Part shown: positions 31,546-49,410 of the stretch, piece by piece
Position numbering within the stretch: the first letter of the stretch is position 1
How the letters are laid out: each line of letters opens with the position of its first letter
Sequence record: OU509535.1
Strand: one strand, 5' to 3'
Length of the DNA: 64,000 nucleotides
Position numbers and translations under genes: made by a program
Notes under the pieces: generated by a model
Seen by the model: only the letters and a program-made list of their open reading frames with translations
What the model was told of the DNA's origin: nothing
Database searches by the model: none

Positions 31546-31550
31546 TAAAT

Positions 31551-31669: not shown

Positions 31670-31763
31670 AAATCACCCGGGTAGATTTATCTTTACAATA
31701 AAAGTACTTGCTTTAATCTTTCAGTACTGTTATTATATATTCATACCAAACAGGAGAACTACC

Positions 31764-31934
31764 ATGAAATACGCGTACTCTTATTTTATTGTAAACGGTG
31801 AACGTTTGACCATCGGCCAGGCTGCTGTAAAACATGAAATCATTTGCGATGATCTGGCAAAGATGCTACCAGGTGAAACGCAAGAGTTTTACAAAGGCTT
31901 TCAGAAAGTCACTGTGACCCGCTGTGAAGATTGA
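31764..31934 (+). CDS. small hypothetical protein (56 aa, not in track)
   Basis: AGGAG RBS, own promoter. Confidence 0.7.
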   Translation: MKYAYSYFIVNGERLTIGQAAVKHEIICDDLAKMLPGETQEFYKGFQKVTVTRCED

Positions 31935-31998
31935 TCCAGTACTGGGGTAGGAATACCCCTAAAACGTCCTGTAACGCATTGTAAGAGGTTTTTATAAT

Positions 31999-32226
31999 AT
32001 GGCTATAGAAGTTAACGCTGGGGATATAAAGGCGGCTGTACTGCGTACCCTGAAAGCATACGGCAGAAAGCTGAATGATCGCAACGTTCCCTATTATTTC
32101 CTTGCTGCTACTCATAAAATGGCAATAGCTGAGGCTCGCGGGTGGCTGAATGATCGCAGTACTGTAAAGAGTACCAGAACAAGAAACGCAATTGAGCGAT
32201 GGATAAAAGAATTAAATCATTTCTAA
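31999..32226 (+). CDS. small basic hypothetical protein
   Basis: ORF track; GAGG RBS. Confidence 0.7.
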   Translation: MAIEVNAGDIKAAVLRTLKAYGRKLNDRNVPYYFLAATHKMAIAEARGWLNDRSTVKSTRTRNAIERWIKELNHF

Positions 32227-32299
32227 TAGTTCAGCTAAGGGAATCAGTACTGATTCCCTGTTTAGTACTGAAATTATAAGGGGAGTTAATTAATTCCCC

Positions 32300-32314
32300 T
32301 TTACAAATCTTTAC
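32300..32314. promoter_or_regulatory. CpxR-box-like site
   Basis: TTTACAAATCTTTAC 10 bp upstream of TTGACA at 32325. Confidence 0.5.
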
Positions 32315-32359
32315 AAAAGAATGGTTGACATAGTATTCCAGTACTGGTATTATGTATTC

Positions 32360-32410
32360 ATAGACAGAACAAGTCTTTGGCCCACCGGGTGCGGAGGAGT
32401 ATCTATTAGA
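32360..32410 (+). ncRNA. small non-coding unit (conserved family)
   Basis: promoter 32325-32353; agac-agaacaa-gtct; CCCACCGGGTGC; GTATCTAT. Confidence 0.6.
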
Positions 32411-32414
32411 TTGA

Positions 32415-32439
32415 ATGAGAATGAGAATGATTTGCATTT
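32415..32439. promoter_or_regulatory. Fur-box-like site
   Basis: TGAGAATgATTTGCA preceded by extra AATGAG hexamer. Confidence 0.6.
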
Positions 32440-32444
32440 ACTGT

Positions 32445-32494
32445 ACTGAATATATTTCCGCACCCTTTTGGGCTTTTCGATTACTTTCTACTTG
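32445..32494 (-). ncRNA. small non-coding unit (degenerate copy)
   Basis: minus-strand TTGCAT-16-TATACT; CCCAAAAGGGTGC. Confidence 0.45.
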
Positions 32495-32533
32495 TTAATA
32501 AGTATACCATAATCAGTACTGAATGCAATGGTC

Positions 32534-32548
32534 TTTACAAATCTTTAC
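32534..32548. promoter_or_regulatory. CpxR-box-like site
   Basis: TTTACAAATCTTTAC. Confidence 0.5.
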
Positions 32549-32645
32549 AAAAGAAAATAATTATAAAAAGTACTGAAAAAGTACTTGACGTAATAATGTA
32601 GTACTGGCATAATGAGTACATACCAAACAGAACGGAGTAACTAAA

Positions 32646-32933
32646 ATGTTTAATGAAAATGATCATATTGTTAAAGAGTTTTCTTTCAGTAAGCCGATCC
32701 ATTTAGAAAACGGTGAAACGCTGGACAATAAATTTTATGGTAGTATTATTAAGCGTTATACATCGCGTAGTAGTACTGGAATTTTGTGGGAAGTGAATAA
32801 ACAGTACAATGGTAATTCGCTGGTTGTCAATGAGTGGGAAAGTTATGCAGTAGCGGAAATGGATTTTTCTAACTTCATTACTGAATCTTTGAACGATGAT
32901 ATCTTTTACAAGTTCACAGCGGAAAGGGTTTAA
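32646..32933 (+). CDS. hypothetical protein
   Basis: ORF track; GGAG RBS, own promoter. Confidence 0.8.
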   Translation: MFNENDHIVKEFSFSKPIHLENGETLDNKFYGSIIKRYTSRSSTGILWEVNKQYNGNSLVVNEWESYAVAEMDFSNFITESLNDDIFYKFTAERV

Positions 32934-33053
32934 AAAGTTTTAAAGAGTACTTGACAACATAAACCAGTACTGTATAATGTATTGCATAGAAAGGAGATTC
33001 CATTATTCTGGAATCTCCGATAAAACAAACTAATCAGTGAAGGAGTAATTGCC

Positions 33054-33665
33054 ATGAATGTTATCGATACCATCTATTCTAAATCTTTCGATGAACTGAA
33101 TGCAGAGCAGAAAGAAAAAGCAATTGATATTATGCGGGATCTGGAACGCCACGATTCAGATCCATTCTGGGCACAATTAATTAATGAAGATAAACGCGAA
33201 TTAATGGATAATGAATATGGTTTTACTGATACTGTAATTCATTATAGCGGCTTTTGCTCACAAGGCGATGGGGCGTCAATTAGTACTGAATCAATCGACG
33301 CCGAGACGTTTTTACGCAAAATTAAAGCATGGTCGAAATTCCGTGTATTGCATAAACATTTCAATGATGGTAATATTACATTAAAGATCGCTCGCAACGA
33401 TCATCGTTATTCTCATGAAAATACCGTTTATGGTGTGGTGGATCTGGACTACGGCACTGAATTCACTGCTAAACAGGAAGAGAAAGCGGAAGAACTTGAA
33501 ACGCTTTTGACTGAAACTATTCGTGATCTTTCACGCCAGCATTATCAGGTTCTGAGCGATGAAAACGATTATCAAAATAGTGATGAAGCATTGATTGAAT
33601 CGATTAATGCAAATGATTATAATTTCAAAGTGGATAGTACTGGTAACGTATTGGGGTTAGCGTAA
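33054..33665 (+). CDS. conserved phage/ICE protein of the family often labelled antitoxin of toxin-antitoxin stability system
   Basis: YSGFCSQGDGAS, RYSHENT, YQNSDEALIESINANDYNF motifs recalled from that family; function unverified. Confidence 0.6.
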   Translation: MNVIDTIYSKSFDELNAEQKEKAIDIMRDLERHDSDPFWAQLINEDKRELMDNEYGFTDTVIHYSGFCSQGDGASISTESIDAETFLRKIKAWSKFRVLHKHFNDGNITLKIARNDHRYSHENTVYGVVDLDYGTEFTAKQEEKAEELETLLTETIRDLSRQHYQVLSDENDYQNSDEALIESINANDYNFKVDSTGNVLGLA

Positions 33666-33755
33666 TGACTAAATTATATATTCGTTTCTGTTTTGCCTGG
33701 TACTTGTATAATCTGCAAAATGGTTATACAGTGAAATAATGCACTGATATACTGT

Positions 33756-33787
33756 AAAACGTCCTGTAAACGATTATGGGACGTTTT
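33756..33787. repeat. AAACGTCCTGTAA hairpin repeat (also 31961, 41244, 46416)
   Basis: aaaacgtcc...ggacgtttt; ~43 bp near-identical to 41238-41280. Confidence 0.75.
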
Positions 33788-33954
33788 AAGGAATATTAGT
33801 ACAATGTTAGTACTGAATGATTTAAACGCCTTACAGTGGCTTACAGAGCGTTTAAAAAGTACTTGACGCAATAATGTAGTACTGGCATAATTCATCTATA
33901 CCAAATAAGCAACAAATGGAATCAGTACTGATTCCCTTGTAAGGAGTAACCAAA

Positions 33955-34269
33955 ATGAGTACTAAAGAACTGAATGTAACTACCAACACTTATAAGACGT
34001 TATGCGGTCGGTTGTTACGTGATTATTACACTGTTGAAATCGAAGAACGCGAATTACCCGAAGATAAACACTATTGGGAAAGTGGTGTGAGTCCTCTGTT
34101 ACGGGTAACAACGTCTAAGCATGTTTTCTTTACTTCCCGCATTCATGTTAATAAGCGTGTTGAATTGACTTTCTCTTTCAGTGGTAGTTATAAAGATCAT
34201 GAGATATTAAATGATCATATCGTTATTAGCAAATTTATCCAAATGTACGGGGCGGATTCTTTGCTTTAA
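33955..34269 (+). CDS. hypothetical protein
   Basis: ORF track; AAGGAG RBS. Confidence 0.8.
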   Translation: MSTKELNVTTNTYKTLCGRLLRDYYTVEIEERELPEDKHYWESGVSPLLRVTTSKHVFFTSRIHVNKRVELTFSFSGSYKDHEILNDHIVISKFIQMYGADSLL

Positions 34270-34355
34270 GTACTTGACAATGCGATCCAGTACTGTATAA
34301 TGTATTACACCAAAGGGGATACATAGTGTATCCCTGATATAAAGGAGTAGCGACT

Positions 34356-34715
34356 ATGCGAGCTTTTAACGTTTATAAGAATGACAAGAAAATTGACGTT
34401 GTTTATTATTCCGAAGTAATGACGGCAAAAGAAGTAACCGATTTGCTGAATAGCCGTGGTGAATACAACGGCGAAGTAAAAGCATTTCGGTCATTGAATA
34501 GTGCGAATATTCGCACAGTACTGAAAAATGCTAAAACTGTTTTATTCAATGATGACGAATATTTTAATAAAGATGTTACGGGTATTAAAAACCTGGAAGA
34601 TCTGAAAAGCCTTATTGGTATTAAAGGCAACGTATACAAAGTGGGGGAAGTCGGATCTCGCCATGAATATAAATTAGCCAATAGTGATTATAAATTTTCA
34701 ATCCTGGTAATGTAA
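34356..34715 (+). CDS. hypothetical protein
   Basis: ORF track; AAGGAG RBS. Confidence 0.8.
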   Translation: MRAFNVYKNDKKIDVVYYSEVMTAKEVTDLLNSRGEYNGEVKAFRSLNSANIRTVLKNAKTVLFNDDEYFNKDVTGIKNLEDLKSLIGIKGNVYKVGEVGSRHEYKLANSDYKFSILVM

Positions 34716-34716
34716 T

Positions 34717-34920
34717 ATGAAAGTTTATATTTTGGAAGTGGAAGAATGTAATTCATATTCTTACAGTGGTACACTATCACGTGTGGAGGCGGTATTTGCC
34801 AGCGAGAAAGAAGCCCATGCCGCCGGGATTCAAAAAGTAAAAGAAGGCTATGAAGGTTATAGCGTCGATGCTTATGATATTCAGGGCGATCTTTCAGTAC
34901 TGTTAAAGGAATTAAAATAA
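34717..34920 (+). CDS. hypothetical protein
   Basis: ORF track. Confidence 0.75.
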   Translation: MKVYILEVEECNSYSYSGTLSRVEAVFASEKEAHAAGIQKVKEGYEGYSVDAYDIQGDLSVLLKELK

Positions 34921-35135
34921 TGGAATATGAATTAATATATCACACTCGGTTATATGTTATTTTCTTTGAAATAGCGTTATGGGGAGTAAAGGCAACGATT
35001 TATAATAAAGACGTTGCCGACGATCAAGAATGGATCGTTGTTGCAGAAGATAAAACGCCTCATGATTCGTTAAGTACTGATTTTAAATTATGCCGTGAAT
35101 TATTAAAGAGAATAAGAAAAGATAATAATATATAA
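34920..35135 (+). CDS. hypothetical protein
   Basis: ORF track; AAGGA RBS. Confidence 0.7.
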   Translation: MEYELIYHTRLYVIFFEIALWGVKATIYNKDVADDQEWIVVAEDKTPHDSLSTDFKLCRELLKRIRKDNNI

Positions 35136-35234
35136 AACAAAGGGGATCAATCGATCCCCTTTTTGCTTCAGTACTGAATTAATAATAGATACACTACGGC
35201 ACCCTATGGGTCAGTGCCTTGTGTCCGGCTTATG
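35134..35234 (-). ncRNA. complete ~100-nt small RNA gene (conserved family)
   Basis: minus TTGACT-17-CATAAT (35241-35269); gcc-ggacacaa-ggc; ACCCATAGGGTGC; GTGTATCTAT; ends in terminator 35139. Confidence 0.7.
35139..35165. terminator. bidirectional intrinsic terminator
   Basis: aaaggggatc-aatc-gatccccttttt. Confidence 0.85.
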
Positions 35235-35279
35235 TGATACATTATGCCAGTACTGCGAACATAAGTCAATAGATGATTT

Positions 35280-35294
35280 GTAAAGAAGTGTAAA
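35280..35294. promoter_or_regulatory. CpxR-box-like site
   Basis: GTAAAGAAGTGTAAA. Confidence 0.5.
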
Positions 35295-35499
35295 TGCACA
35301 GGAAGCGTTTTAAGGCGTTAATCTGTTGCTGGTGGCTGATAGTACAGAGAAGTGTTTTAGATTGATTGTAGGCCGTTGTAGGCGTTTATAGATAGTAAAG
35401 TACTGATAATGTTTAATGATCCTGGTATGTGCGAATTATTTTAATTTTTTTCGTATTGGGTATTGACGGATTATGTCAGTACTGGCATAATGTATCACA

Positions 35500-35622
35500 T
35501 GAAGCGGCGAGATAGAAAATCATCTCAGTAGCTGGCCAGTAAAGCATACGAAGTCCTGGTGTCGCCTCAAACGGTTTTAGGTATCAAATAGAACGTAACA
35601 TCTAAACGTTGATGATACTGAA
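35500..35622 (+). ncRNA. structured RNA candidate upstream of H-NS-like gene
   Basis: promoter TTGACG-17-CATAAT at 35463; ggcga/tcgcc enclosing gagat/atctc and ccag/ctgg; gtatca/tgatac; second promoter follows at 35643. Confidence 0.4.
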
Positions 35623-35724
35623 AACTAAAAAGAAAAAAGTAGTTGACAAGTACTAACGAGAATGAGATAATCTCTCTCGTTGAAACAAACAAACAATCTT
35701 AATCAAAACTTAAAGGTGAATAAA

Positions 35725-36225
35725 ATGGCTAAACTGAATTCTGTTGTTGTTGCTCTGATCGCTGGTGATATCGCTGCTCTGAATGCTTCTTTCGCGTCGG
35801 TATCGATGGAAGATATGAAAACTGTTCGTAACAACTTTAACGATTTTTACTCCAAATTCAAAGCTGCAAATGAAGCGGCGGAAGCGGCTGCAAAAGAGCG
35901 TAAAGCACAGATCGAAACCGAAACTAAAGAACTGGTAGACGCCCTGGTAGCTGCTGGCCTGGATCTGGAAATGGCCGCCGAAGTCGCCAGCCAGAAAATG
36001 GCGGTGAAATATCCCGAACTGGCTCCGAAGTCGGGAACTGGTAAAACCTGGTCGTTTGAAACCGTATTCGTTAACGTTGACGGTGAAAAACTGGAAATTG
36101 GCACCAAAGGCAACAAAGGCAGTATGAAAGCACTGGCGGCGGCACGCGAAGCAATTGCCGCTGGCAAATACAAAGATCGTGCTGAATGGATCGCCGCTCA
36201 CGCCTGGACTGAAACCGAAGCGTAA
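35725..36225 (+). CDS. putative H-NS/StpA-like N-terminal domain protein
   Basis: SMEDMKTV..AAEAAAKERKAQIE..LVAAGLD resembles H-NS TLETLEEM..AAAAEVEERTRKLQ..LIADGID; strongly host-optimal codons; C-terminal H-NS TWTGQG motif absent. Confidence 0.45.
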   Translation: MAKLNSVVVALIAGDIAALNASFASVSMEDMKTVRNNFNDFYSKFKAANEAAEAAAKERKAQIETETKELVDALVAAGLDLEMAAEVASQKMAVKYPELAPKSGTGKTWSFETVFVNVDGEKLEIGTKGNKGSMKALAAAREAIAAGKYKDRAEWIAAHAWTETEA

Positions 36226-36246
36226 TAATTCAGTACTGTAATAATT

Positions 36247-36277
36247 AGCCTCCTGTAATTAGGAGGCTTTTTATTTT
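36247..36277 (+). terminator. intrinsic terminator
   Basis: agcctcct-gtaatt-aggaggct + T run. Confidence 0.9.
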
Positions 36278-36367
36278 GTTCAAAAAAATATTTTAATTTA
36301 TTTTTTGAACGAACTCGAAAAATCAGCTATAATAATAAAGGGTGTTAATTACAGAGACCCCCCATAG

Positions 36368-36420
36368 TGTTCGCTACGCTCACATAATGATCTTACTCGT
36401 TGCACTCGTAAGATCATTAT
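36368..36420. repeat. 13-bp inverted repeat with GTGCAA-containing loop
   Basis: ataatgatcttac-tcgttgcactc-gtaagatcattat. Confidence 0.8.
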
Positions 36421-36842
36421 CCAATCGGCCTTTGGCTATTTCTTTTTGATTTCCTACGGAAACCAAACGAAACCACCAGCAAAGGCAGATCCCATTATTT
36501 GATTTAGTTAGTACTGCAATGAATTAGTTTAATCGCACTACAAAGCAATCAATCCCTTTTGTAATAGCTCACAGAACGCAATAAGACGCGTTTAAATGAC
36601 TTCCCTATGTAATGCCATTCCTTTTTAATAAGTCCTCTTAAAACGCGTTACAGTGCGTTATACGGAGTTTAATAATACTCATCATTTCTTTTTCAAAAAG
36701 TACTTGCATTAATGATCCAGTACTGCAATAATGTACTTCACTGAAACGCAGTAGCGAAGTAAGTAAATGCAAATAAGTACTTGACAAAGTGTTGTAGTAC
36801 TGGCATAATGAATACATCAAAACGATTAAGGAGAAACACCAA

Positions 36843-37316
36843 ATGTTAAAACTTCATAAAGTACTTGATAACGCAGTTGTGACCGACTTTTTCCTGTCTC
36901 TTAACAACGAACCGAAAACAGCGAAGGAAATTGTTTTGAGTGGTTACATTGCCAGCAAGTCAGAGATCGCACATTTGGAAAGTGCTTTCAAGTCCGGCGA
37001 TGAATTGTATCGAAAAATGCAAAATACCATCGAAGATTTGCAATATATCAATTTACGTGATATTGTAGACAACAAATTGGATATTTCAGAAGAAGCACGC
37101 GAAAACCTGGTAAGTAAATTATGTTACCGCTGCCGAACTGCAAAATGGAATCGAATTCGTAGTATTATTACTTACGATTTAAGTAATATCGATTCCAAAT
37201 CAATTCTTGAACGTATGTTATTAAATTTACAAAGCAATGAGTGGTTTTATACCGCCGCTCAATCTCATAGCGAAGAAATTGCATATATTCGTGATTATGT
37301 AATTTACAGCAAGTAA
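36843..37316 (+). CDS. hypothetical protein
   Basis: ORF track; AAGGAG RBS. Confidence 0.85.
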   Translation: MLKLHKVLDNAVVTDFFLSLNNEPKTAKEIVLSGYIASKSEIAHLESAFKSGDELYRKMQNTIEDLQYINLRDIVDNKLDISEEARENLVSKLCYRCRTAKWNRIRSIITYDLSNIDSKSILERMLLNLQSNEWFYTAAQSHSEEIAYIRDYVIYSK

Positions 37317-37389
37317 TTAATAATTGATTAGCCATCATTAAAGCTGGTGGCTAATAGAATATTAATAACCTGTTAGGAGAATAATCTTT

Positions 37390-37659
37390 ATGAAAGGTAT
37401 TAGTACTTTAATTGATAAAAACACTCATGTAAGACGTTCAATGATTGCCGTATCACTGGCTAAAGTTGTTGCAAGTGGTTATCTGGTTTTTGTTGTAGAT
37501 GGTAAATTGCAAGAGCGTTCAATTGCATTTAGTACTAAAGAAAATTGCCGTTATATTGTATTCAAGAAAGAAGCATACAAGATAGATTTACCAGCGAAAC
37601 CGATCTCCGGCGGTTACAATGTTGAAAGCCTTTATGAAAGGCCACCGTATACTGCGTAG
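37390..37659 (+). CDS. hypothetical protein
   Basis: ORF track; AGGAG RBS. Confidence 0.8.
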   Translation: MKGISTLIDKNTHVRRSMIAVSLAKVVASGYLVFVVDGKLQERSIAFSTKENCRYIVFKKEAYKIDLPAKPISGGYNVESLYERPPYTA

Positions 37660-37913
37660 AATCGATTTTGAGCGGCTTTAATGAAATATAGGGTATCAGT
37701 ACTGATACCCGTTTAAAACAGTGTAGGAGTGATTCTGTGAAGCGTGAACAAGCTTTATTGACGCCTGAAGAGGCAAGACGCTATGAAATGTTTTCAAACC
37801 AGGAAACGATCAAAGCGGCACAATATAATCCGGTTGCTTGTACAGTACAAAGAAAGAATTTTGTACTAAATGAAGTAGAAAGTATTATCAAATCAAATAA
37901 GGAGTAAAACGCT

Positions 37914-38186
37914 ATGCAAAATAACCGTCCAATGATCCGCAACATGCTTTTCGTATTCCAGAAAAAAGTTAATGTAACTTCGGTAAATGGTGAACGTAAA
38001 TTAAATGCAGCATTCGCCAAATATACCCAAAGCAAAAACATCCATTACTTTTATCTTACTCTGAATGAGTTTAATGATCTGGTAAAAGAAATGTTTGTCA
38101 GTACTGAAATTGTTGCACCTGTAAGCACTGATATCATTCTAAAAGAATGGGAAAGTTTTTACAAAAGTTCTGTTGTAATCGCTTGA
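37914..38186 (+). CDS. hypothetical protein
   Basis: ORF track; AAGGAG RBS. Confidence 0.8.
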   Translation: MQNNRPMIRNMLFVFQKKVNVTSVNGERKLNAAFAKYTQSKNIHYFYLTLNEFNDLVKEMFVSTEIVAPVSTDIILKEWESFYKSSVVIA

Positions 38187-38240
38187 CAACATAATCCAGT
38201 ACTGGCATAATAACTACATAGACCACAAAGGAGAAACATA

Positions 38241-38420
38241 ATGGAAACTGTAATTGCTACTACCAAAATCAATGGACTGGATAATGAAGTTTCATTGATC
38301 CATGACGGTAACGAATATGTTGTGTCATATGGTATCTATAAAACCTATCATGACGCTATCAATGAAGCTTTTGAGGATTATATGAAAGCAATTGAAATTG
38401 CTTATGATGATTATCGTTAA
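38241..38420 (+). CDS. small acidic hypothetical protein (59 aa, not in track)
   Basis: AAGGAG RBS, own promoter. Confidence 0.7.
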   Translation: METVIATTKINGLDNEVSLIHDGNEYVVSYGIYKTYHDAINEAFEDYMKAIEIAYDDYR

Positions 38421-38503
38421 AAGTACTTGCATAATTCTTTCAGTACTGTATAATGTATTATATCAAAGGGAATGAATGATTCATTCCCACATAACCAGGA
38501 GTA

Positions 38504-38866
38504 ATGACTATGTTTGATAAAGTTTTATTTTCTGATAACACCTCTGAAACCGAGATCCCGGAAGCGGTAAAAGCTTTTGCTCAATTAGTTGCCCAGCGTC
38601 AAACTGATAATTACGACGGGCCTTATTCTTTTCTTACTGAGATTAGTAAAGGCAAAAAGTTTATTAAACTTATTCGCCGCGAGAAGTGGAAAGATAACGG
38701 ACAATTAACAGGCGGATCGGTATTTGCCTTTATTGATCCCGATGGTAACATTTACAAATCAGCGACAGCTAAAGCACCAGCTAAAGGCATTCGCGGAAAT
38801 GTTAACATCAACGGCGGCGGCGATGCAATCGGGCGTGATGGTTATATTCGTTACTTTCGTAATTGA
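38504..38866 (+). CDS. conserved phage hypothetical protein
   Basis: GKKFIKLI..SVFAFID.DGNIYKSA..KAPAKGIRGN motif. Confidence 0.8.
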   Translation: MTMFDKVLFSDNTSETEIPEAVKAFAQLVAQRQTDNYDGPYSFLTEISKGKKFIKLIRREKWKDNGQLTGGSVFAFIDPDGNIYKSATAKAPAKGIRGNVNINGGGDAIGRDGYIRYFRN

Positions 38867-38917
38867 CAAATCTTTACAAATCCAGGGGTTGACTTCGGTC
38901 GCCCCTTTTGTTATTAT
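38863..38917 (+). promoter_or_regulatory. CpxR-like half-match plus terminator/promoter fusion cassette
   Basis: TTGACAAATCTTTAC then ggggTTGACttcggtcgccccttttgtTATTAT. Confidence 0.7.
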
Positions 38918-38923
38918 ATATTC

Positions 38924-38975
38924 ATACCACAGAGCAAGTGGTTTAGCCCACAGGGTGCCGAGATGTATCTATAGT
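38924..38975 (+). ncRNA. small non-coding unit (conserved family)
   Basis: accac-agagcaa-gtggt; GCCCACAGGGTGCCGAGATGTATCTATAG. Confidence 0.7.
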
Positions 38976-39105
38976 TTAATGATTTGAAGTACTGAAAAAT
39001 AATTATAAAAAGTACTTGCTAGACGTGAATTCTTTTAAGAATTCACTTGTATTTGTGATTCAGTACTGCTATTATATATTCATACCAATTAAGGAGATTA
39101 TCCAA

Positions 39106-41046: not shown

Positions 41047-41076
41047 AAAAACACTGGCATATACAGGGGAATAAAA

Positions 41077-41969: not shown

Positions 41970-42070
41970 AGAAAAAGGGGAGACAACAAGTCTCCCTTTT
42001 TTGTATTCAGTACTAAATTATATAGATACATTTATGCACCCTGTGGGTTAGTAGCTTGTTCTGCTTTATG
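41968..42070 (-). ncRNA. complete ~100-nt small RNA gene (conserved family)
   Basis: minus TTGACA-17-TATAAT (42076-42104); agc-agaacaa-gct; ACCCACAGGGTGCATAAATGTATCTAT; ends in terminator. Confidence 0.7.
41974..42002. terminator. bidirectional intrinsic terminator
   Basis: aaaaggggagac-aacaa-gtctcccttttt. Confidence 0.85.
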
Positions 42071-42195
42071 TAGTAATTATATGATAAAGCTGGTGGCTTG
42101 TCAACACTTATTTTAAAATAAAAAGTACTGAATAGTACTTGCAAAAAGTATTCAGTACTGTATAATGTTTATATTGAGATTAAGGAGTACTTACT

Positions 42196-42735
42196 ATGTT
42201 AATCAAAATGTATCACGGTTCTAATAATTTTGATCACCGCCAGGGATATCTGGGTGGAAAACCTGGCAATTTTCATATGGGTTTTGGACTATATCTAACT
42301 AACTCTTATCGCTGGGCTGATAATTATGGGCGACGTCATTATGAGTTAGATTTAGATATTTGTAGTACTGGTGCCGCACATAATGTATGGATTCCTACTA
42401 AACACTTTATGGAATTCATAAGAGTATATTGTACTAAAAAGTTTTATACAATGTGCTGTAAAGAATTTAAAGACCGTGAATCTTTGAATGTAGAACGCGT
42501 TGAATTGCTTATTATCAATATGGAAAGGCACGTTACGAAAATCGCTAAACCATTTGCTGAATTCGTCGCTGCCTGGGGTTGCACGCATAGTATTGAAATA
42601 TCCGGTAACTATGGTGGTGTTTGCGTGCGGCTTTATGATTTCAGTACTATAAAGAATTGTATCATAAGCCAGGAAACGCAGGATTTTTATTATCCAGATG
42701 AATTGACAAGATATCCTCAAAAAAACTTGTATTAA
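42196..42735 (+). CDS. putative ADP-ribosyltransferase-fold protein (H-Y class)
   Basis: YHGS near N-terminus and GFGLYLTNSYRWADNYG, the PARP/DUF3990-like signature. Confidence 0.55.
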   Translation: MLIKMYHGSNNFDHRQGYLGGKPGNFHMGFGLYLTNSYRWADNYGRRHYELDLDICSTGAAHNVWIPTKHFMEFIRVYCTKKFYTMCCKEFKDRESLNVERVELLIINMERHVTKIAKPFAEFVAAWGCTHSIEISGNYGGVCVRLYDFSTIKNCIISQETQDFYYPDELTRYPQKNLY

Positions 42736-42785
42736 TGATTCAGTACTGATATAATGTATTAAATTAATCAGGAGGAATATCTTAA

Positions 42786-42914
42786 ATGAATAACCGTCAA
42801 TTGATGATCGATGCATCTCGTTTTCGTTCAAAAGAAGAAAAGAGAAGTTGCATTAAATGGGTTTTGTCAACTTTCATTATTGGATTACTTATTGTTGCTT
42901 TTGTTTATAGTTAG
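42786..42914 (+). CDS. small membrane peptide (42 aa, not in track)
   Basis: GGAGG RBS; hydrophobic C-terminus. Confidence 0.55.
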   Translation: MNNRQLMIDASRFRSKEEKRSCIKWVLSTFIIGLLIVAFVYS

Positions 42915-42999
42915 TACTTGACAATATAATCCAGTACTGTATAATGTTTATCAAAGGGAATGAATTATTCATTCCCAAAATAATCAAAGGAGTTTTACC

Positions 43000-43224
43000 A
43001 TGATCTATATTATCAAAGTATCCACGACCGTAGGAAAATCAGAAGTTGTGGCTGTTATCACTTCCCTGGAAGCGAAAGATCTTCATACCCCGTTTAATGT
43101 ATGGGTGGAGGATAATTTCGGCCAATTCAGTACTGCTGAATATATCGAACAATTCGCCGTCCCGGATACTGGTAAAATCAAAGTGGATCGTATCCTGGAT
43201 TTTGATAACAGTAATTACTTTTAA
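43000..43224 (+). CDS. hypothetical protein
   Basis: ORF track; AAGGAG RBS. Confidence 0.8.
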   Translation: MIYIIKVSTTVGKSEVVAVITSLEAKDLHTPFNVWVEDNFGQFSTAEYIEQFAVPDTGKIKVDRILDFDNSNYF

Positions 43225-43310
43225 AAACGTTTGACAACTGATTTCAGTACTGTATAATGTTTATCAAAGGGAATGAATTATTCATTCCCGATTAATCAAA
43301 GGGGTTTATC

Positions 43311-43457
43311 ATGAAAGAGTATATCTTTGAAGTAACTTTCACCTTTGGCCCGCACCAACTGATCCGGTCTTCTGGCTACAACCGCGAACAAGCATTCAGC
43401 AACCTTCGCCGTATGTACCCCAATGTCGTGACCTGGGTCAAGTGTGAAGAAGCATAA
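43311..43457 (+). CDS. small hypothetical protein (48 aa, not in track)
   Basis: AGGGG RBS, own promoter and 5' hairpin. Confidence 0.65.
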   Translation: MKEYIFEVTFTFGPHQLIRSSGYNREQAFSNLRRMYPNVVTWVKCEEA

Positions 43458-43537
43458 AATAATTAGTCAGTACTATTGACAACGGGTGATAGTACTGCTA
43501 TAATTATTTTAACTTATACGGAATGGAGTTAAAACAA

Positions 43538-43774
43538 ATGTTCAGTGTCAGCAAACAAGGCGACAAATTTCTGGTTCAATACCATCATTTTGATCTGGTA
43601 TACACTCAGCCAGATTGTGTATTCAGTACTCAGGAAGGTGCTGAAAAGCACAAAAAAGCCTTGATCGAAAATAGCAACAGTGGTACATTAGATTTCATCC
43701 AACAGTACTGGAATGAATCTAAGCTGGTGGACGGTTATTCCAACACAGTTTATTATGTAGGTATCACTGATTAA
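43538..43774 (+). CDS. hypothetical protein
   Basis: start moved to ATG after GGAG. Confidence 0.75.
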   Translation: MFSVSKQGDKFLVQYHHFDLVYTQPDCVFSTQEGAEKHKKALIENSNSGTLDFIQQYWNESKLVDGYSNTVYYVGITD

Positions 43775-44052
43775 TCGGGAGTACTGTTAATGTATATGCC
43801 AATTATCATACCGTTAGCAGTACTGTTAATCGCCGCCGTTATCTGCGAACAATATCATTTGTTAGGAATGTAAACTATGATTCAATGTGAATTGTCAGTA
43901 CTGATCACGCTGTTCTATATGTTGGGGCAAAAGAAACAAGATATTTCTGGTGATAATGCATTATTGTATCAATCATTAGACCAATGGCAACGATCTGAAT
44001 TAAGCAATGCATGGGCGAAAGGTTACAACGATAGTACTGCAAAATAATTTAA

Positions 44053-44089
44053 AAAAGGGGTTGACTTACGTCAGCCCTTTTGTTATCAT
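44053..44089 (+). promoter_or_regulatory. terminator/promoter fusion cassette
   Basis: gggTTGACttacgtcagccctttt-gt-TATCAT. Confidence 0.75.
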
Positions 44090-44095
44090 TAGTAC

Positions 44096-44145
44096 ATAGC
44101 AAGAACAATGCTCAAGCCCACAGGGTGCCGAAGTGTATCTATAGT
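44096..44145 (+). ncRNA. small non-coding unit (conserved family)
   Basis: agca-agaacaa-tgct; GCCCACAGGGTGCCGAAGTGTATCTATAG. Confidence 0.7.
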
Positions 44146-44233
44146 TTATGTAGTACTGAATCATTAATTTTCTTGACAATTGGTTTAGTACTGGATATAA
44201 TAGCCGCCATTGAATACAGGAGGATTTTAAAAA

Positions 44234-44500
44234 ATGGCCTATCATACACCACATAGACACTTCATTGATAAACGCGGTATGGCTTTTAAAGCAATGAGTG
44301 ACAATCGTAACACACAAATGTACTTTAAAGATATGACGTTAGAAGAAGCTATTGAAGCTGTAAGGAATGATCGTAAGCTTTCCAAGAAAGTTGCATCAGT
44401 ACTTAATGCTTTTTGGTTTGAACGTACTACCAACAAAGAATACAAAGAAAAGATGATTGCACTTGGTAAAGTAGTAAGAGAAGAAAAATTATATCTTTAA
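44234..44500 (+). CDS. hypothetical protein
   Basis: ORF track; GGAGG RBS. Confidence 0.8.
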   Translation: MAYHTPHRHFIDKRGMAFKAMSDNRNTQMYFKDMTLEEAIEAVRNDRKLSKKVASVLNAFWFERTTNKEYKEKMIALGKVVREEKLYL

Positions 44501-44751
44501 GTACTTGACTATGTGATTCAGTACTGCTATTATATATTCATACCAATTAAGGAGATTAACCAAATGAAACAAGCTAAATTTAATTCAGAAATCAAAGCTG
44601 CAAAAGCACATAAAGTACAGTTAGTAGTACTGGCTATTGTATCAATCTTTTTGCTGTGCAACATCGGCTAAAATAATTATTACAGTACTATTGACAACAC
44701 GTGATAGTACTGGTATAATTACTTTACCAAATCAAAAAGGAGTAACCAAAA

Positions 44752-45027
44752 ATGCGGATTAAACTTACCAGTGATGAGATTCATTCAGTACTGACTACCA
44801 ATATGCAGGACTGGAAAAAGTACGCTGATATCGAAGAAGTCCAGGAACTCAATGATGATTTGAGTGTAGATGAAATTATCACTATTTGCTCATCTCAATT
44901 CTTTGATGATATCAATGATGAAGAGCAAGATGTATTTGATATCATGGATAAACATTTTATTGCGTATGATGTTTTTCCGTACACTCGCCAGGCTTATATT
45001 CTTATTCACAACATTTACAACAAATAA
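44752..45027 (+). CDS. acidic hypothetical protein
   Basis: ORF track; AAGGAG RBS. Confidence 0.8.
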   Translation: MRIKLTSDEIHSVLTTNMQDWKKYADIEEVQELNDDLSVDEIITICSSQFFDDINDEEQDVFDIMDKHFIAYDVFPYTRQAYILIHNIYNK

Positions 45028-45039
45028 GGAATAATAATC

Positions 45040-45405
45040 ATGGAAAAAGAATTTAGAATCAAATACAATATCAGTACCGATGGCGGTTTTGAAGTACCAG
45101 AAGAAGATCAAGAACGTCTTAATGATGTTATTATGATTGACATTTCAAATAAAATCATTCAAGGCTACCGCGAAGGCGAATTGTGTGAATCGTTGATGGA
45201 TCAATTCAATGAAGTGGAAACGTTTTATCGTGGCTGGTGGAGTATCGAAGAAGTTCACAAAGTACACGAATACCGTGTATTCTGGATTAACGGCGTTAAT
45301 GATATCGAAGATATCATTGTAAAAGAAAGTAGTGAATCCGCCGCCATTCAGTACTTTAAAGATCACTACCCCAATAAACGTTATCACCATTTAGAAAAAA
45401 TTTAA
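45040..45405 (+). CDS. acidic hypothetical protein
   Basis: ORF track; AAGGA RBS. Confidence 0.8.
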   Translation: MEKEFRIKYNISTDGGFEVPEEDQERLNDVIMIDISNKIIQGYREGELCESLMDQFNEVETFYRGWWSIEEVHKVHEYRVFWINGVNDIEDIIVKESSESAAIQYFKDHYPNKRYHHLEKI

Positions 45406-45493
45406 AAAGTACTTGACACCTAATATCAGTACTGCCATAATATACACATCAAGGGGAGAATAGTTCTCCCCACCATAAAAGGAGTATAATACT

Positions 45494-45925
45494 ATGTCTA
45501 AATCTATTTCTCTCGCACCAATTGAAGTACAGAATGCTTTTGCTCATGTACGTTCGTTTTTTCCTGATGTTGTTAGTGTTTCATTTGATGAAGATTGCCG
45601 CTGGAGTTATGAAACGCCTGGTGGATATTCCCCGGACTTTGATGATCATGATATTGACCAAGATATTCTAGAAGCTGCCGCTGATGCTCAATATAACATT
45701 ATGGTTCCAGTTGAATATATTGCGGATTGCTTTATTGAAATTGAACTAGCTCGCAGTACTGTAAAAGATAAACCAACTATTGTATTAACACAAATTGATG
45801 AAGAATTGTGGGACGTTACTGTGGGCGAAGGTGCTGCAACAACTTGGGAAACATTAGAAAGTGCTGTGTGTGAATATACCGATTCAATCCGTGAATATCA
45901 GTTTAAAGTTTCACGTAGTGCATAA
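45494..45925 (+). CDS. acidic hypothetical protein
   Basis: ORF track; AAGGAG RBS. Confidence 0.8.
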   Translation: MSKSISLAPIEVQNAFAHVRSFFPDVVSVSFDEDCRWSYETPGGYSPDFDDHDIDQDILEAAADAQYNIMVPVEYIADCFIEIELARSTVKDKPTIVLTQIDEELWDVTVGEGAATTWETLESAVCEYTDSIREYQFKVSRSA

Positions 45926-46013
45926 AAAAGGTATTGACAACATAATCCAGTACTGATATATTAATACACATAGGGGCAAACAACTTGCCCCACTAAACAA
46001 AAGGAACTACCAA

Positions 46014-46370
46014 ATGATTACTAAATTCTACGCTACTCGTGAACTGGCTCGGAACGTCGCTCGTGAAGAAGGTGAAACCTTCAAAGATATGGGTAAAGAT
46101 TCCCCTGCTGGTCAACGCTGGGCAGTGCTGTTCCGCGAGGTCAAAGACCTGGTAGAAAACGCTAAAGCCGTTGAAATGAACGTTCCCACCAAAGAAGATA
46201 AAGATCTGACTGATGCCCTCGCCGCTGCATTCTCCGCGATGGATAAAGCAGCAGCGGTAGTACTGAAAGTGCCGGAATTCGTAACCCGCAAAGTGCATTC
46301 AGTACTACAAAATAAATTCAACGGTAAACAGGTTCAAGTGTTTACTAAACGTAAAATTCCGGTCATGTAA
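46014..46370 (+). CDS. hypothetical phage protein, host-optimal codons
   Basis: FYATRELAR..KDMGKDSPAGQRWAV. Confidence 0.85.
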   Translation: MITKFYATRELARNVAREEGETFKDMGKDSPAGQRWAVLFREVKDLVENAKAVEMNVPTKEDKDLTDALAAAFSAMDKAAAVVLKVPEFVTRKVHSVLQNKFNGKQVQVFTKRKIPVM

Positions 46371-46393
46371 AATCTGACTATTACAGTACTAAC

Positions 46394-46415
46394 AAAGGGG
46401 CTTCAATGCCCCTTT
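46394..46415. terminator. intrinsic terminator
   Basis: aaaggggc-ttcaat-gccccttt. Confidence 0.7.
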
Positions 46416-46448
46416 AAACGTCCTGTAAACCATTCTAAGAGGTTTTAC

Positions 46449-46697
46449 ATGAAAAAGGTACAACTACACAAAGGAGTGATGAAAGTTCATTATAATGCCC
46501 CGCAACGCATTATAGATAGAGCCATTGAACTAGCCAATCAATACCTAGCTGGTGGATTAACTCCCAGGAAGTTAAGCAACGGGAAGTTATATGTAATCAA
46601 CGTTGATACTAATAATCGTATAGTAATCAAAGGTGAAAGCATATCACTGTATGAACATCAGCAGTATAACAAGAAAGTAAAAAATATTAGTAGATAA
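46449..46697 (+). CDS. small basic protein, possible ParE/RelE-like fold
   Basis: YVINV..NNRIVI..SLYEHQQYN resembles ParE-like small phage proteins (recall only). Confidence 0.35.
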   Translation: MKKVQLHKGVMKVHYNAPQRIIDRAIELANQYLAGGLTPRKLSNGKLYVINVDTNNRIVIKGESISLYEHQQYNKKVKNISR

Positions 46698-46776
46698 GTG
46701 TTGACAACTCATTTCAGTACTGCCATAATGTATACATACAAGGCAATACCGCCTAATAACATAGGAGTAACTGAAA

Positions 46777-47199
46777 ATGAAAAAATCCACTAAAATTGTC
46801 TTAGGTGTATTTGTTGTTCCGACAGTCGCCTTTTTTACTTGTGCTATGATTTTTGGTGATGCTTCTCGGGTTGCCGCAAAAATCGAAAAAGAAAAACAAG
46901 TCCAGGCACAAGTTAAGAAAGAAGAAAAACCAAATTATAACACTGTATGGGAAGCAATTTGCCATACCAGTAATGGTAAAAGGATCTCCATCCTTACAGC
47001 GATGAATAATGGAAAATCAATCGTCGGAAACGAATATATGGAAGTTACTTCCAGTACTGGTAAAGAATTTGTAATGACGAACTATAATAACAATAACGTT
47101 GCAATTGTTACACAAGATTTTAAAGGTAATGCAGTACTTGAATATCATACGGAATATGAAGTAATATTTGCAAAATGCACATTTGAATGGGGTGCATAA
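46777..47199 (+). CDS. membrane-anchored exported protein
   Basis: N-terminal KK + hydrophobic segment; AGGAG RBS. Confidence 0.75.
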   Translation: MKKSTKIVLGVFVVPTVAFFTCAMIFGDASRVAAKIEKEKQVQAQVKKEEKPNYNTVWEAICHTSNGKRISILTAMNNGKSIVGNEYMEVTSSTGKEFVMTNYNNNNVAIVTQDFKGNAVLEYHTEYEVIFAKCTFEWGA

Positions 47200-47214
47200 A
47201 ATAAACAAAAAATC

Positions 47215-47256
47215 AAAAAAGGGGGGGTTGACATATGTCAGCCCCTTTGCTATTAT
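47215..47256 (+). promoter_or_regulatory. terminator/promoter fusion cassette
   Basis: gggTTGACatatgtcagcccc-tttgc-TATTAT. Confidence 0.7.
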
Positions 47257-47262
47257 TAATAT

Positions 47263-47307
47263 CAAGAAAACAAGCTAACCCACAGGGTGCATAAATGTAT
47301 CTATAGT
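47263..47307 (+). ncRNA. small non-coding unit (conserved family)
   Basis: CTAACCCACAGGGTGCATAAATGTATCTATA identical to reverse complement at 42021-42051. Confidence 0.65.
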
Positions 47308-47382
47308 TTATTAAAGAATTTTAGTACTTGACAACGTAGTACAGCAGTACTAAAATATCTACATACAAAGGAGATTACCAAA

Positions 47383-47967
47383 ATGAACAAACATCTTAAA
47401 GTACTGAATAAATGTAAATCCAATACCGAAATGTTACTGTACTGTTACAAAAATTTAATTAAACTCGGGAGAGGTTCATCCAGAACAGTATTTTTGTTAA
47501 CAAAAAATAAAGTACTGAAAGTTGCTCATAACCATATTGGCAACCAACAGAATACGGCGGAAATCACCGCCTGGCTGTATGTTGATTATGATCGCTATTA
47601 TAATAAACGTTTTTTCGCTAAAGTGTTCCCTGATATGTCGCATTTCAAAGATGTATACATAGTACAGGAGTACTGCGACAATATCAGTACTAAAGAAGCG
47701 AAGCCATACATTGAACATTACTTGACACCTCGCACAATTGAAAATGAGCGTGCTAAACGCTTCCACACGGCGTTAAGAGATGTAGACAATACCCTTAACT
47801 ATAAAACGCTGGTGGACTTAAACATGGGCAATATAGGCCGTTCTGTAAGGGGTGCAATCAAAATCCGTGATTATGGATTATCTGAGCATATTGCTAAACA
47901 GTACCGAGAAGCCCGCTTCCAATACCAGAAGCTCAAAAGTATTAGTAAAATAAGTATTGATTTATAA
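47383..47967 (+). CDS. putative Ser/Thr protein kinase (protein-kinase-like fold)
   Basis: Gly loop LGRGSSRTV, VLK lysine, NTAE, catalytic DLNMGN, DYG. Confidence 0.75.
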   Translation: MNKHLKVLNKCKSNTEMLLYCYKNLIKLGRGSSRTVFLLTKNKVLKVAHNHIGNQQNTAEITAWLYVDYDRYYNKRFFAKVFPDMSHFKDVYIVQEYCDNISTKEAKPYIEHYLTPRTIENERAKRFHTALRDVDNTLNYKTLVDLNMGNIGRSVRGAIKIRDYGLSEHIAKQYREARFQYQKLKSISKISIDL

Positions 47968-48034
47968 TTTCAGTACTGGTATAGTACTTTCACAGGGGAG
48001 ATAATCTCCCCCAAATCACAAAGGAGATTTTACC

Positions 48035-48397
48035 ATGAGTACTAAACCATTTGTAACCACTCGTTCCAATCTGACTGAGATCTATGTACATGGTGGATAT
48101 GAGGAAACGTATGTCACTGGTATTATGGTAGAATTCCATCAGGGTTATCGGTTTATGTTGGTAGATTCAGAAATCTATCATACCCAACAAGATAAACATG
48201 GTTATGTCAATAAGTACTCCACCGATGAAGTACTGAAACGCCTGGATAATAAAATTAAACAAATTCAAAAACATCTTGACAACGGCGGAAAACTTAATCA
48301 TTTACTTTGGGATAGCTTAGATCCCTGCTACGGTTCGGATGCATATGGTAAAAGCCGTGACACTGCAATGAAAGTACTTAAAGATTATTTCTTTTAA
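48035..48397 (+). CDS. hypothetical protein
   Basis: ORF track; AAGGAG RBS. Confidence 0.8.
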   Translation: MSTKPFVTTRSNLTEIYVHGGYEETYVTGIMVEFHQGYRFMLVDSEIYHTQQDKHGYVNKYSTDEVLKRLDNKIKQIQKHLDNGGKLNHLLWDSLDPCYGSDAYGKSRDTAMKVLKDYFF

Positions 48398-48488
48398 GTA
48401 TTGACATAGGTTATCAGTACTGTATAATGTTTTGCATACACAAGAGATTCCAGTACTGGAATCTCTAATCTAAAGGAGAATACCGAAA

Positions 48489-48770
48489 ATGATTACTGGT
48501 CACATTACTAACTATGCAAAACGCCGCGATGTAGAAATCGAAGTACTGAAAGCTGGCGAAGTTGACGATGACGCCCAGGTATGGTTCTACACCGCAGACA
48601 ATGACTGCGAACCAGTACTGATGTACCTGATTAATAATGATGGTTCTCTTACTTATCGTAGCAAACTGATGAAGTCACTGGAAGATATGCCAGCACATAT
48701 CAATAATAAAGAAGTACTGAAACGCGTAATCTGCTACATCTCAGACCAGCACAAAGCGGATATGATGTAA
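48489..48770 (+). CDS. hypothetical protein
   Basis: ORF track; AAGGAG RBS. Confidence 0.8.
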   Translation: MITGHITNYAKRRDVEIEVLKAGEVDDDAQVWFYTADNDCEPVLMYLINNDGSLTYRSKLMKSLEDMPAHINNKEVLKRVICYISDQHKADMM

Positions 48771-48783
48771 TCTTTACAAATAT

Positions 48784-48817
48784 GGGGGTTGACTAATGTC
48801 AGCCCTATTGGTATTAT
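48784..48817 (+). promoter_or_regulatory. terminator/promoter fusion cassette (degenerate T run)
   Basis: gggTTGACtaatgtcagccc-tattgg-TATTAT. Confidence 0.65.
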
Positions 48818-48823
48818 ATATTC

Positions 48824-48873
48824 AATCCAGCGAAATGGTCTAACCCTCAAGGGTGCCGAGATGTATCTATAGT
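48824..48873 (+). ncRNA. small non-coding unit (conserved family)
   Basis: cca-gcgaaa-tgg; ACCCTCAAGGGTGCCGAGATGTATCTATAG. Confidence 0.65.
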
Positions 48874-49022
48874 TTAATGATTTGAAGTACTGAAAAATAA
48901 TTATAAAAAAAGTACTTGTATTTGTGATTCAGTACTGCCATAATATATCCATACAAGGGAAACATAGTGTTTCCCGATAATCCACAGCAATAGTGCTGGT
49001 GGATGAACCAGGAGTAATAACC

Positions 49023-49319
49023 ATGCAAGACAAATCAATTCATGTTCAAGTAGTTTCAAGCCGTGGCTATGACGATGTAGTACTGGATATCATGGTTAAA
49101 GATCTGCGGGACTATGCAATCATTGCACGTCATATCATGGTTAACTCCATTTGTATCAGTACTGGTGCTGATATGGAAGAAAACCGCTTACATATAGAGG
49201 AACATCTATACAAAGCACGTATGAATGATAGTAGTGTATTCATCATTGAAGGTGCCGAGGGTAAAGAGTATACCGTATACCTTCGCCAGTACCTGGAAGT
49301 AGAAAAAGAAGAAGATTAA
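49023..49319 (+). CDS. hypothetical protein
   Basis: start moved to ATG after AGGAG. Confidence 0.8.
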   Translation: MQDKSIHVQVVSSRGYDDVVLDIMVKDLRDYAIIARHIMVNSICISTGADMEENRLHIEEHLYKARMNDSSVFIIEGAEGKEYTVYLRQYLEVEKEED

Positions 49320-49410
49320 TTTATATAAAGTACTTGCTTTAATAGTTCAGTACTGTATACTGTTTATCAAGGGGAAGCAATAGTGCCTCCCCACTCATAG
49401 GAGATACACC

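Follow-up and report, generated by a model that had tools for sequence, protein, structure and literature searches.

What does a phage gain from placing the same short palindrome, AGTACT, twice in one promoter after another, at a constant distance of 20 bp and in overlap with the elements that are contacted by the RNA polymerase? This question is raised by bases 1–64000 of OU509535.1 (the whole 64,000-nt stretch is referred to here as the window), a record without annotation that holds a Klebsiella phage genome of 347,546 bp. Its patchwise identity of 95–97% to K64-1, RaK2, Muenster, and RCIP0023, of the genus Alcyoneusvirus, identifies it by sequence as a RaK2/K64-1-like Klebsiella jumbo phage, and the whole 347.5-kb genome was reassembled from the record. 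The answer preferred here, tentatively and with rather less than even confidence, is that AGTACT is the site of a conserved, putative phage-encoded reader, and that the copies in the promoters are placed to occlude the contacts of sigma-70.

Two AGTACT positions in the promoters of the terminal repeat

An initial annotation of the window had listed 18 AGTACT pairs, from 31703 to 49329, and every one of these is an exact AGTACT-N14-AGTACT. Four more matches lie within an array at 30182–30247, and 100 dinucleotide-preserving shuffles of the window produced none. The paired promoters share the layout aaaAGTACT-TGACA (or TGCAT/TGCTT)-N9-(c)AGTACT-G(n)-TATAAT, in which, as the annotation had also stated, the first site ends on the -35 box, its last T being the first T of the -35 hexamer, and the 20-bp distance is unchanged with spacers of either 16 or 17 nt, because the extra base sits between the second site and the -10 element. 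The second AGTACT is followed by a G, and then by the -10 hexamer, either at once (16-nt spacer) or after one extra base (17-nt spacer), in which case the T of the site and the G fall at -15/-14 and form the TG of an extended -10. Counted from the start of the -35 hexamer, the sites stand at offset -5, sharing the T of TTGACA, and at offset +15, sharing the T of the extended -10. A dyad-symmetric word overlaps the sigma-70 promoter elements here, as an operator would, and a protein bound to it would therefore compete with the RNA polymerase.

All 18 pairs are on the + strand, and are given here from the first base of the upstream site to the last base of the downstream one, with the -35 hexamer, the spacer length, and the -10 hexamer. 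The combination TTGACA-16-TATAAT recurs at 32946–32971, 34269–34294, 40017–40042, and 42913–42938, and TTGACA-17-CATAAT at 36776–36801 and 45408–45433. The others are TTGCTT with a spacer of 17 (31703–31728), TTGACG with a spacer of 17 and a TG extended -10 (32580–32605), TTGACG-17-CATAAT (33858–33883), TTGCAT-17-AATAAT (36699–36724), TTGCAT-16-TATAAT (38422–38447), TTGATT-17-TATTAT (40331–40356), TTGCTT-16-TATAAT (40626–40651), TTGCAT-16-TATACT (41623–41648), TTGCAA-16-TATAAT (42134–42159), TTGACT-17-TATTAT (44500–44525), TTGTAT-17-CATAAT (48911–48936), and TTGCTT-16-TATACT (49329–49354). AGTACT is invariant in all of them, alongside nine different -35 and five different -10 hexamers. These promoters are grouped in duplicated, near-identical sub-families, and therefore do not represent 18 independent cases.

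By homology, the block of early promoters coincides with a direct terminal repeat (DTR) of ~19.8 kb. The DTR of Muenster, predicted by PhageTerm, spans bases 1–20030, of which base 1 corresponds to position 30260 of the window and base 20030 to ~50087, which places the equivalent region at 30260–50087 (+ strand); a step in the GC content, 35–38% inside vs. 26–32% outside, matches these bounds. The region contains small open reading frames (ORFs) on the + strand, 151 AGTACT sites, and nearly all the paired promoters, and is common to the relatives only in patches. Terminal repeats of ~20 kb have been confirmed in the related fEgEco12 by restriction digestion (PMC13070987), and the terminal-repeat genes of PA5oct, a distant relative, are highly transcribed early (PMC7318152). 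It is by this likeness, and by the sigma-70 consensus of its promoters, that the block in OU509535.1 is taken to be early. A sole AGTACT-N14-AGTACT promoter was observed outside the terminal repeat, at position 335327 of the genome, within a tRNA cluster that includes tRNA-Ser(GCU), the reader of the AGU codon that is inflated by AGTACT.

The pairs had been interpreted initially as a helically phased operator. What stands is that the site is palindromic, invariant, and in overlap with bases contacted by sigma-70; what does not is the phased pair, given that each offset also stands alone, in this phage as well as in those of other genera. When sigma-70-like promoters were sought without regard to AGTACT, ~15 more strong ones were recovered on the + strand (32325–48428), which have only the spacer site, at +15 (or +14/+16), with -35 hexamers starting at 32325, 35463, 38183, 39047, 39279, 39686, 41318, 42727, 43231, 43476, 44173, 44691, 45934, 46701, and 48401. 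The +15 site is thus present in ~33 promoters, 18 of which have the -5 site too. Among the near-consensus promoters, -5 and +15 are the only enriched offsets, with 13 and 26 cases, respectively, in OU509535.1, and six and 23 in 121Q, while offset -5 is also enriched in Yen9-04 (n = 8), XbC2 (n = 4), and the Salmonella phage Munch. Approximately 18 early promoters of Munch carry the -5 site, as AAAAGTACT-TGACA/TGCAT, and only three the +15 site; the sites are mostly single in the promoters of both Munch and 121Q. The 20-bp distance therefore results from two positions that are fixed independently, each with one polymerase-contact base, and a phased two-site operator is not required by the data.

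At 39011–39075, one promoter of the 48911 type has its -35 separated from the upstream AGTACT, which is thereby displaced, by an inserted hairpin-forming segment of ~27 bp (GTGAATTCTTTTAAGAATTCAC). Two other likenesses appear poor, one to the LexA box, where the spacing from CTG to CAG is 12 here rather than 10, and one to the T4 MotA box, with TGCTTTA being found in only three promoters.

AGTACT across the genome and the clade

The word is not specific to promoters, because the window contains 301 copies, against 14.9 ± 4.0 expected, and the genome 945, approximately eight times the expectation, which makes it the most over-represented hexamer. Some 800 copies lie outside promoters, and must be accounted for by any explanation. 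The preferred form, CAGTACTG, occurs 101 times in the window, where the base composition predicts ~0.6, and 246 times in the genome, and the consensus extends to TTCAGTACTGAA. The 301 sites are dispersed throughout the window (1–64000), with ~200 inside ORFs, mostly in the frames that encode Ser-Thr or Val-Leu. In 360 ORFs, 663 sites were counted, in comparison with 205 ± 10 when synonymous codons were shuffled within genes and 113 ± 8 when the codon order was shuffled. The dipeptides are in excess as well, with 770 Ser-Thr vs. 440 expected (446 for the reverse, Thr-Ser) and 673 Val-Leu vs. 443 expected (408 for Leu-Val), and AGT-ACT encodes 49% of the Ser-Thr dipeptides, vs. 16% expected. It is therefore the nucleic acid that is under pressure, strongly enough for the proteins to be altered. 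Core, partly conserved, and lineage-specific genes have equal densities of the site, at 2.37, 2.61, and 2.26 per kb, respectively.

The spread of the word raises the possibility, somewhat doubtful in itself, that AGTACT has no role specific to promoters, with a genome-wide pressure filling every position that tolerates it, the cheapest of which, in a promoter, are those that share a base. The duplication and recombination of promoter cassettes would then have spread and homogenized the arrangement. Outside the repeat, AGTACT is in fact equally dense in intergenic and coding DNA (2.8 and 2.4 per kb, respectively), as divided by greedy longest-ORF calls rather than gene-finder output; each offset is found alone, the promoters fall into near-identical sub-families, and the relatives share the repeat in patches. 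Contigs of relatives from wastewater metagenomes also join one early promoter to another, at promoter-proximal points (40661/43263, 41639/44517, 41135/42918, and 40444/44512), which indicates that gene cassettes are shuffled by recombination from early promoter to early promoter. Given these joints and the patchy sharing of the repeat, the early promoters are also recombination joints, which partly explains their uniformity. The absence of any promoter-specific role is more difficult to reconcile with the density inside the repeat, where the intergenic DNA has 13.5 sites per kb (5.2 in coding DNA) vs. 2.8 outside, or with the use of almost only +15 among ~12 tolerated spacer offsets, a choice that recurs in a different genus. 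AGTACT is also more invariant than the core hexamers of the promoters, and the genome-wide pressure would itself be left unexplained.

This pressure is shared by the clade. The word ranks first among the hexamers in 121Q (Escherichia), in XbC2, from Xanthomonas, and in fHe-Yen9-04, from Yersinia (Yen9-04 here), and 903–1313 copies were counted in eight relatives, among them these three phages, Hallingskeid, EJP2, GAP32, and CBB, where a reversed-word control gave 134–200. The preferred form CAGTACTG was counted 242 times in K64-1, against one for the control, and 68 times in Munch, against five. Apart from PA5oct, every relative counted has the excess, across six further lineages on Escherichia, Salmonella, Yersinia, Erwinia, Cronobacter, Pectobacterium, and Xanthomonas. 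The distant PA5oct, with a similar GC content, has 15 copies, or 0.15 times the expectation. A flank rule is common to all four genomes examined, a preceding C being enriched 1.8- to 3.1-fold and a preceding G reduced to 0.37–0.45 of the expectation, and this shared rule, taken with the range of hosts, favors a reader encoded by the phages. AGTACT is, then, a hyperabundant word, in excess over both composition and codon-aware nulls in coding and non-coding DNA, conserved in the relatives, and with no such excess in the outgroup. No account of the AGTACT motif, for RaK2 or for other phages, was recovered from the searchable literature.

Further deviations in word use were observed. PA5oct, in contrast to the Rak2-like clade, has AGTACT as one of its two most strongly depleted hexamer palindromes. 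An enrichment of ~20-fold was found genome-wide in OU509535.1 for GCTGGTGG, the Chi sequence of E. coli, with a strand bias (16 on the + strand and four on the -, with ~0.8 expected per strand), and 121Q, Yen9-04, and XbC2 are enriched in it too. In all four of these genomes, CTGGTG ranks next among the hexamers after the words derived from AGTACT, with CTGGTG/GCTGGT as examples in the window.

A host protein might also be the target of the sites, for example, the nucleoid-occlusion factor SlmA, which the phage would bind to manipulate the cell. The SlmA site, GTGAGTACTCAC, is likewise a palindrome, its six central bases are identical to AGTACT, and the T at position 2 is common to both (PMC3020112). 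The half-site of SlmA requires G, T, A, and G at positions 1, 2, 4, and 5, with a purine at 3 (PMC3020112), whereas the phage half-site reads T/A, T, C, A, G, T, with a consensus T at position 1 and a C at position 3. The SlmA flanks are absent, and partly avoided, in the phage, where a G before AGTACT is depleted 2.2- to 2.7-fold and GAGTACTC occurs once in the window, and the same motif and flank rule are found in a Xanthomonas phage. Given the unmet flank requirements and the host range, the identification of the sites as SlmA-binding was rejected, and the binding of a host protein is very improbable.

It is similarly improbable, to a high degree, that AGUACU acts in the RNA, as a processing or stability signal, for example. 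Most genes are indeed on one strand, and several hairpins of the 5′ untranslated regions (UTRs) are tipped by CAGUACUG. The flanks of the word are nevertheless symmetric, as expected for double-stranded DNA, sites are found next to the genome end and in promoter DNA that is not transcribed, and homologous hairpins retain the stem while the center changes.

The genome end and the candidate readers

The third context of the word is the genome end. A cluster of seven sites lies at 30142–30247, with AGTACT at 30142 and 30182, followed by five ATTCAGTACT units with a period of 10 bp (30202–30247). The 10-bp period that had been noted initially for this array, at 30201, alongside the promoters, is real, although the array is not at a promoter, and belongs to the genome terminus. 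It stops 12 bp short of the inferred left end, AGTACTgatatgccacta/agtccg (the slash marks the end). The form (A/G)TTCAGTACT is found 12–22 bp upstream of the left end, usually after further sites, in five lineages, namely, in OU509535.1, in fEgEco12, fENko-Kae01, and CBB, whose ends have been mapped, and, as judged from homology, in Yen9-04. The left end is AGTACTgaaggtggcgatatcccacta/agtagg in fEgEco12, whose ends were verified by digestion (PMC13070987), AGTACTtacccccttccgcta/tatc in fENko-Kae01, and AGTACTgttgaccccttccgcta/tatcc in CBB; in Yen9-04, ten sites with a period of 20 bp stand ahead of ...ccgctatatc. Hexamer clusters adjoin the end-forming cut in all five lineages, upstream only, rather than flanking it on both sides as in the pac site of phage P1. 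No consistent AGTACT was found at the right DTR boundary (CT/TAGC), just outside of which, in OU509535.1, an array at 50110–50205 consists of one AGTACT followed by five one-off variants, ATTCTGTAC(A/T), with a spacing of ~12 bp.

In P1, adenine methylation of the TGATC(A/G) hexamers of pac controls the cutting, and the likeness extends to the presence of several palindromic hexamers near the end-forming cut and of a phage-encoded adenine methyltransferase, whereas P1 has clusters flanking the cut and headful packaging, and the AGTACT phages have clusters on one side, fixed ends, and a 20-kb repeat. The initial annotation had offered a methylation switch of the whole early block, and it might be supposed, on the model of P1, that AGTACT is the target of a conserved Dam-family methyltransferase, with methylation controlling both the early promoters and the cutting of the ends, although this appears rather improbable. 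The clusters beside the cut do resemble pac, the highly iterated palindromes of cyanobacteria are methylated, and a 172-aa Dam-family enzyme (PF05869; 86431–86949 of the genome) is present in synteny throughout the four AGTACT-rich genomes examined, with no match recovered in PA5oct. The annotators of Muenster relate this enzyme, however, to T1 Dam, a GATC enzyme, and 110 other core genes have the same pattern of presence and absence. Methylation alone, moreover, provides no reason for an eight-fold enrichment.

Methyltransferases of the types N6/N4 (PF01555), D12 Dam (PF02086), and N6_Mtase (PF02384) were not found in the genome. The methylation sensitivities of EcoRI, HindIII, SmaI, ClaI, and NruI are such that their cutting of the fEgEco12 DNA argues against non-specific adenine and CpG methylation there. 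The cutting by these five enzymes has been reported (PMC13070987). The genome also encodes a 297-aa DNMT3-like C5-methyltransferase, and the DNA of RaK2 has been reported to be CpG-methylated by bisulfite sequencing (PMC3622015, data not shown); if it is CpG-specific, this enzyme cannot act on AGTACT, because the word has no CpG. Any role of methylation would depend on the conserved Dam-family enzyme, as the sole candidate.

The Dam-family gene is directly preceded, in the same four genomes, by that of a protein of 175–206 aa (203 aa, at 85796–86407 of the genome, in OU509535.1), which the annotators of Muenster labeled as DNA-binding on the basis of HHpred (AP2/ERF domain, I-HmuI), a label that was not reproduced by hidden Markov model searches of Pfam and of the sequences of solved structures. 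Neither of these two proteins was found in PA5oct, a pattern shared by 109 other core proteins; of the 179 proteins common to the four AGTACT-rich genomes, 111 have no match in PA5oct, which is too many to discriminate the reader. A lookup of the most conserved early protein in a protein atlas returned nothing. The H-NS-like protein (35725–36225, + strand), which had been named at first as a candidate, is unlikely to bind AGTACT. It matches Pfam PF22470 (E 6e-6), in the N-terminal oligomerization domain only, and binding of the H-NS type is not palindrome-specific; tblastn recovered a match in 121Q and none (E ≤ 1e-4) in XbC2 or Yen9-04, despite the same excess of AGTACT in these genomes.

Under the preferred reading, a putative reader would bind the double-stranded AGTACT, with a preference for CAGTACTG and a preceding G never being favored, as a symmetric dimer or an enzyme, and selection would maintain ~2.4–2.8 sites per kb throughout the genome. 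The host-sigma-70 early promoters of the DTR would carry a copy fused to the -35 and/or the TG extended -10, at which the bound reader, acting as a repressor, would exclude sigma regions 4 and 3, and the early block would be switched off together. The clusters 12–22 bp upstream of the left end would mark the genome-end cut, and the dispersed copies would label the DNA as phage for a genome-wide process of packaging, protection, or compaction. The operator for a phage protein proposed by the initial annotation is retained here in part, in that the geometry makes an operator-like role plausible, although this would be just one of the uses of a hyperabundant palindrome of the whole clade, which is linked to the left end as well. 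A stronger version, in which a single clade-specific reader uses AGTACT as a self-identity word of the chromosome, for the early shut-off, the end cut beside a phased cluster, and ~1000 marks per genome, is unlikely.

A number of points weigh against this reading. One reader with three roles is a matter of parsimony, not of evidence, and the invariance of AGTACT looks inflated, because the promoters are duplicated, recombining cassettes. The gaps between sites are Poisson-like (coefficient of variation 0.92–1.18), which rules out a regular spacing of the dispersed sites, and density, rather than position, therefore seems to be selected. The positional constraint on single sites is weak in the intergenic DNA (divergence of 3.8% in the sites vs. 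4.5%); the lower divergence of the sites among close relatives does favor the reading in coding DNA, with 2.2% inside the sites vs. 3.5% for the other bases, and the constraint on individual sites is modest overall. Pfam searches of ~56 proteins, from the conserved core and the DTR ORFs, recovered enzymes, but no domain that clearly binds DNA in a sequence-specific manner. Data on transcripts, binding, or methylation in these phages were not found in the material searched, and a search of sequencing runs for the OU509535.1 sequence recovered metagenomes only.

Promoter cassettes, known systems, and the significance of the word

Other features of the block accompany its promoters. Most of the early 5′ UTRs open with a perfect hairpin, some of them centered on CAGTACTG, including those at 32993–33018, 33918–33935 (the palindrome GGAATCAGTACTGATTCC, downstream of the promoter at 33858), 34316–34334, 38468–38488, 40065–40086 (a perfect palindrome of 22 bp with CAGTACTG at its center, downstream of the promoter at 40017), and 41681–41698. 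Read on the minus strand, these hairpins resemble intrinsic terminators, and could block antisense transcription into the repeat. An element of ~75 nt, with the core (T)AGCCCACAGGGTGCCGAGRTGTATCTATAGTTTA, is repeated in ~9–10 copies on both strands, at 30277, 32380, 35199, 38946, 40389, 42036, 44116, 47278, 48840, and 49842, usually downstream of a promoter with its -35 enclosed in a GGGGTTGAC...GTCAGCCCC hairpin. The promoter at 40331 is followed by one copy of the repeated GCCCACAGGGTGC element. In the ~75-nt element, a stem of 3–4 bp around an AGAACAA loop covaries by eye, while RNAalifold detected no covariation and Rfam no match. By megablast, the copy at 40311–40418 is the segment that most of the 56 matched phage records retain, distant ones among them.

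The DTR also encodes a ParE-like toxin domain protein (46449–46697), a protein kinase conserved in the clade (47383–47967), and a protein annotated in the relatives as a YeeU-like antitoxin (33054–33665). A search for related loci seeded with this kinase recovered RaK2 alone, and the Rfam and tRNA scans of the terminal repeat returned no match. The leftmost non-coding part of the DTR (30370–30440) has AAAAATCTGGA(T) in three iteron-like copies, with counterparts in Muenster and, of similar form, in CBB. A sigma-like ORF of 75 aa is encoded in the window, and the core genes at 114086–114826 and 115377–115712 of the genome encode a Sir2-family protein and a protein with a cyclic-phosphate-processing receiver (cREC) domain.

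A number of known systems resemble parts of this arrangement. Like HIP1 of the cyanobacteria (GCGATCGC), Chi, and the DNA uptake sequences, AGTACT is a short word in large excess, spread evenly over coding and non-coding DNA, although HIP1 and the uptake sequences occur at ~1 per kb, and AGTACT at ~2.7 per kb. HIP1 is also a palindrome that shapes the use of codons and dipeptides, is conserved in related genomes, and occurs alongside a methyltransferase, while AGTACT differs in being viral, in its sequence, in being a hexamer/octamer, and in its fixed promoter positions and its cluster by the genome end. The early promoters of SPO1, which are bound by TF1, and the pre-early genes of T5 share the strong promoters for the host polymerase, the small takeover genes, and the long terminal repeat, and, in SPO1, repeated sites of the protein-binding type overlap the promoters. 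The TF1 sites are not a simple palindrome, however, and depend on modified DNA, and neither system has the same word dispersed ~800 times elsewhere. The T4-type PeSL elements are also repeated early promoters with stem-loops around small ORFs, at which recombination shuffles the genes; here, too, a repeated promoter and stem-loop stand by small ORFs and are used as joints, in the manner of a mobile cassette. The hairpins of OU509535.1 nevertheless follow the promoter, within the 5′ UTR, or, in one sub-class, surround the -35, and AGTACT is not part of the PeSL described.

The Rak2-like jumbo phages are under development against Klebsiella, E. coli, and plant pathogens, ahead of any study of their gene regulation; promoters go unmentioned in the RaK2 genome paper. 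An excess of approximately eight times the expectation, with hundreds of added Ser-Thr and Val-Leu dipeptides, implies that AGTACT serves a major DNA transaction, and its conservation extends over phages whose hosts are as far apart as Xanthomonas and Klebsiella. The word provides a handle on this transaction, in the form of a 12-bp probe, of ScaI digestion as a test of modification, and of a map of ~33 early promoters and of the genome ends. What highly iterated palindromes do has long been asked, and would be testable here in a system with a 30-minute life cycle. If a single reader does use AGTACT, the word would be the viral counterpart of the uptake sequences or HIP1, with a known job, and, if it is a word of self-identity, packaging, nuclease protection, or compaction would act on the DNA of the phage, and not on that of the host.

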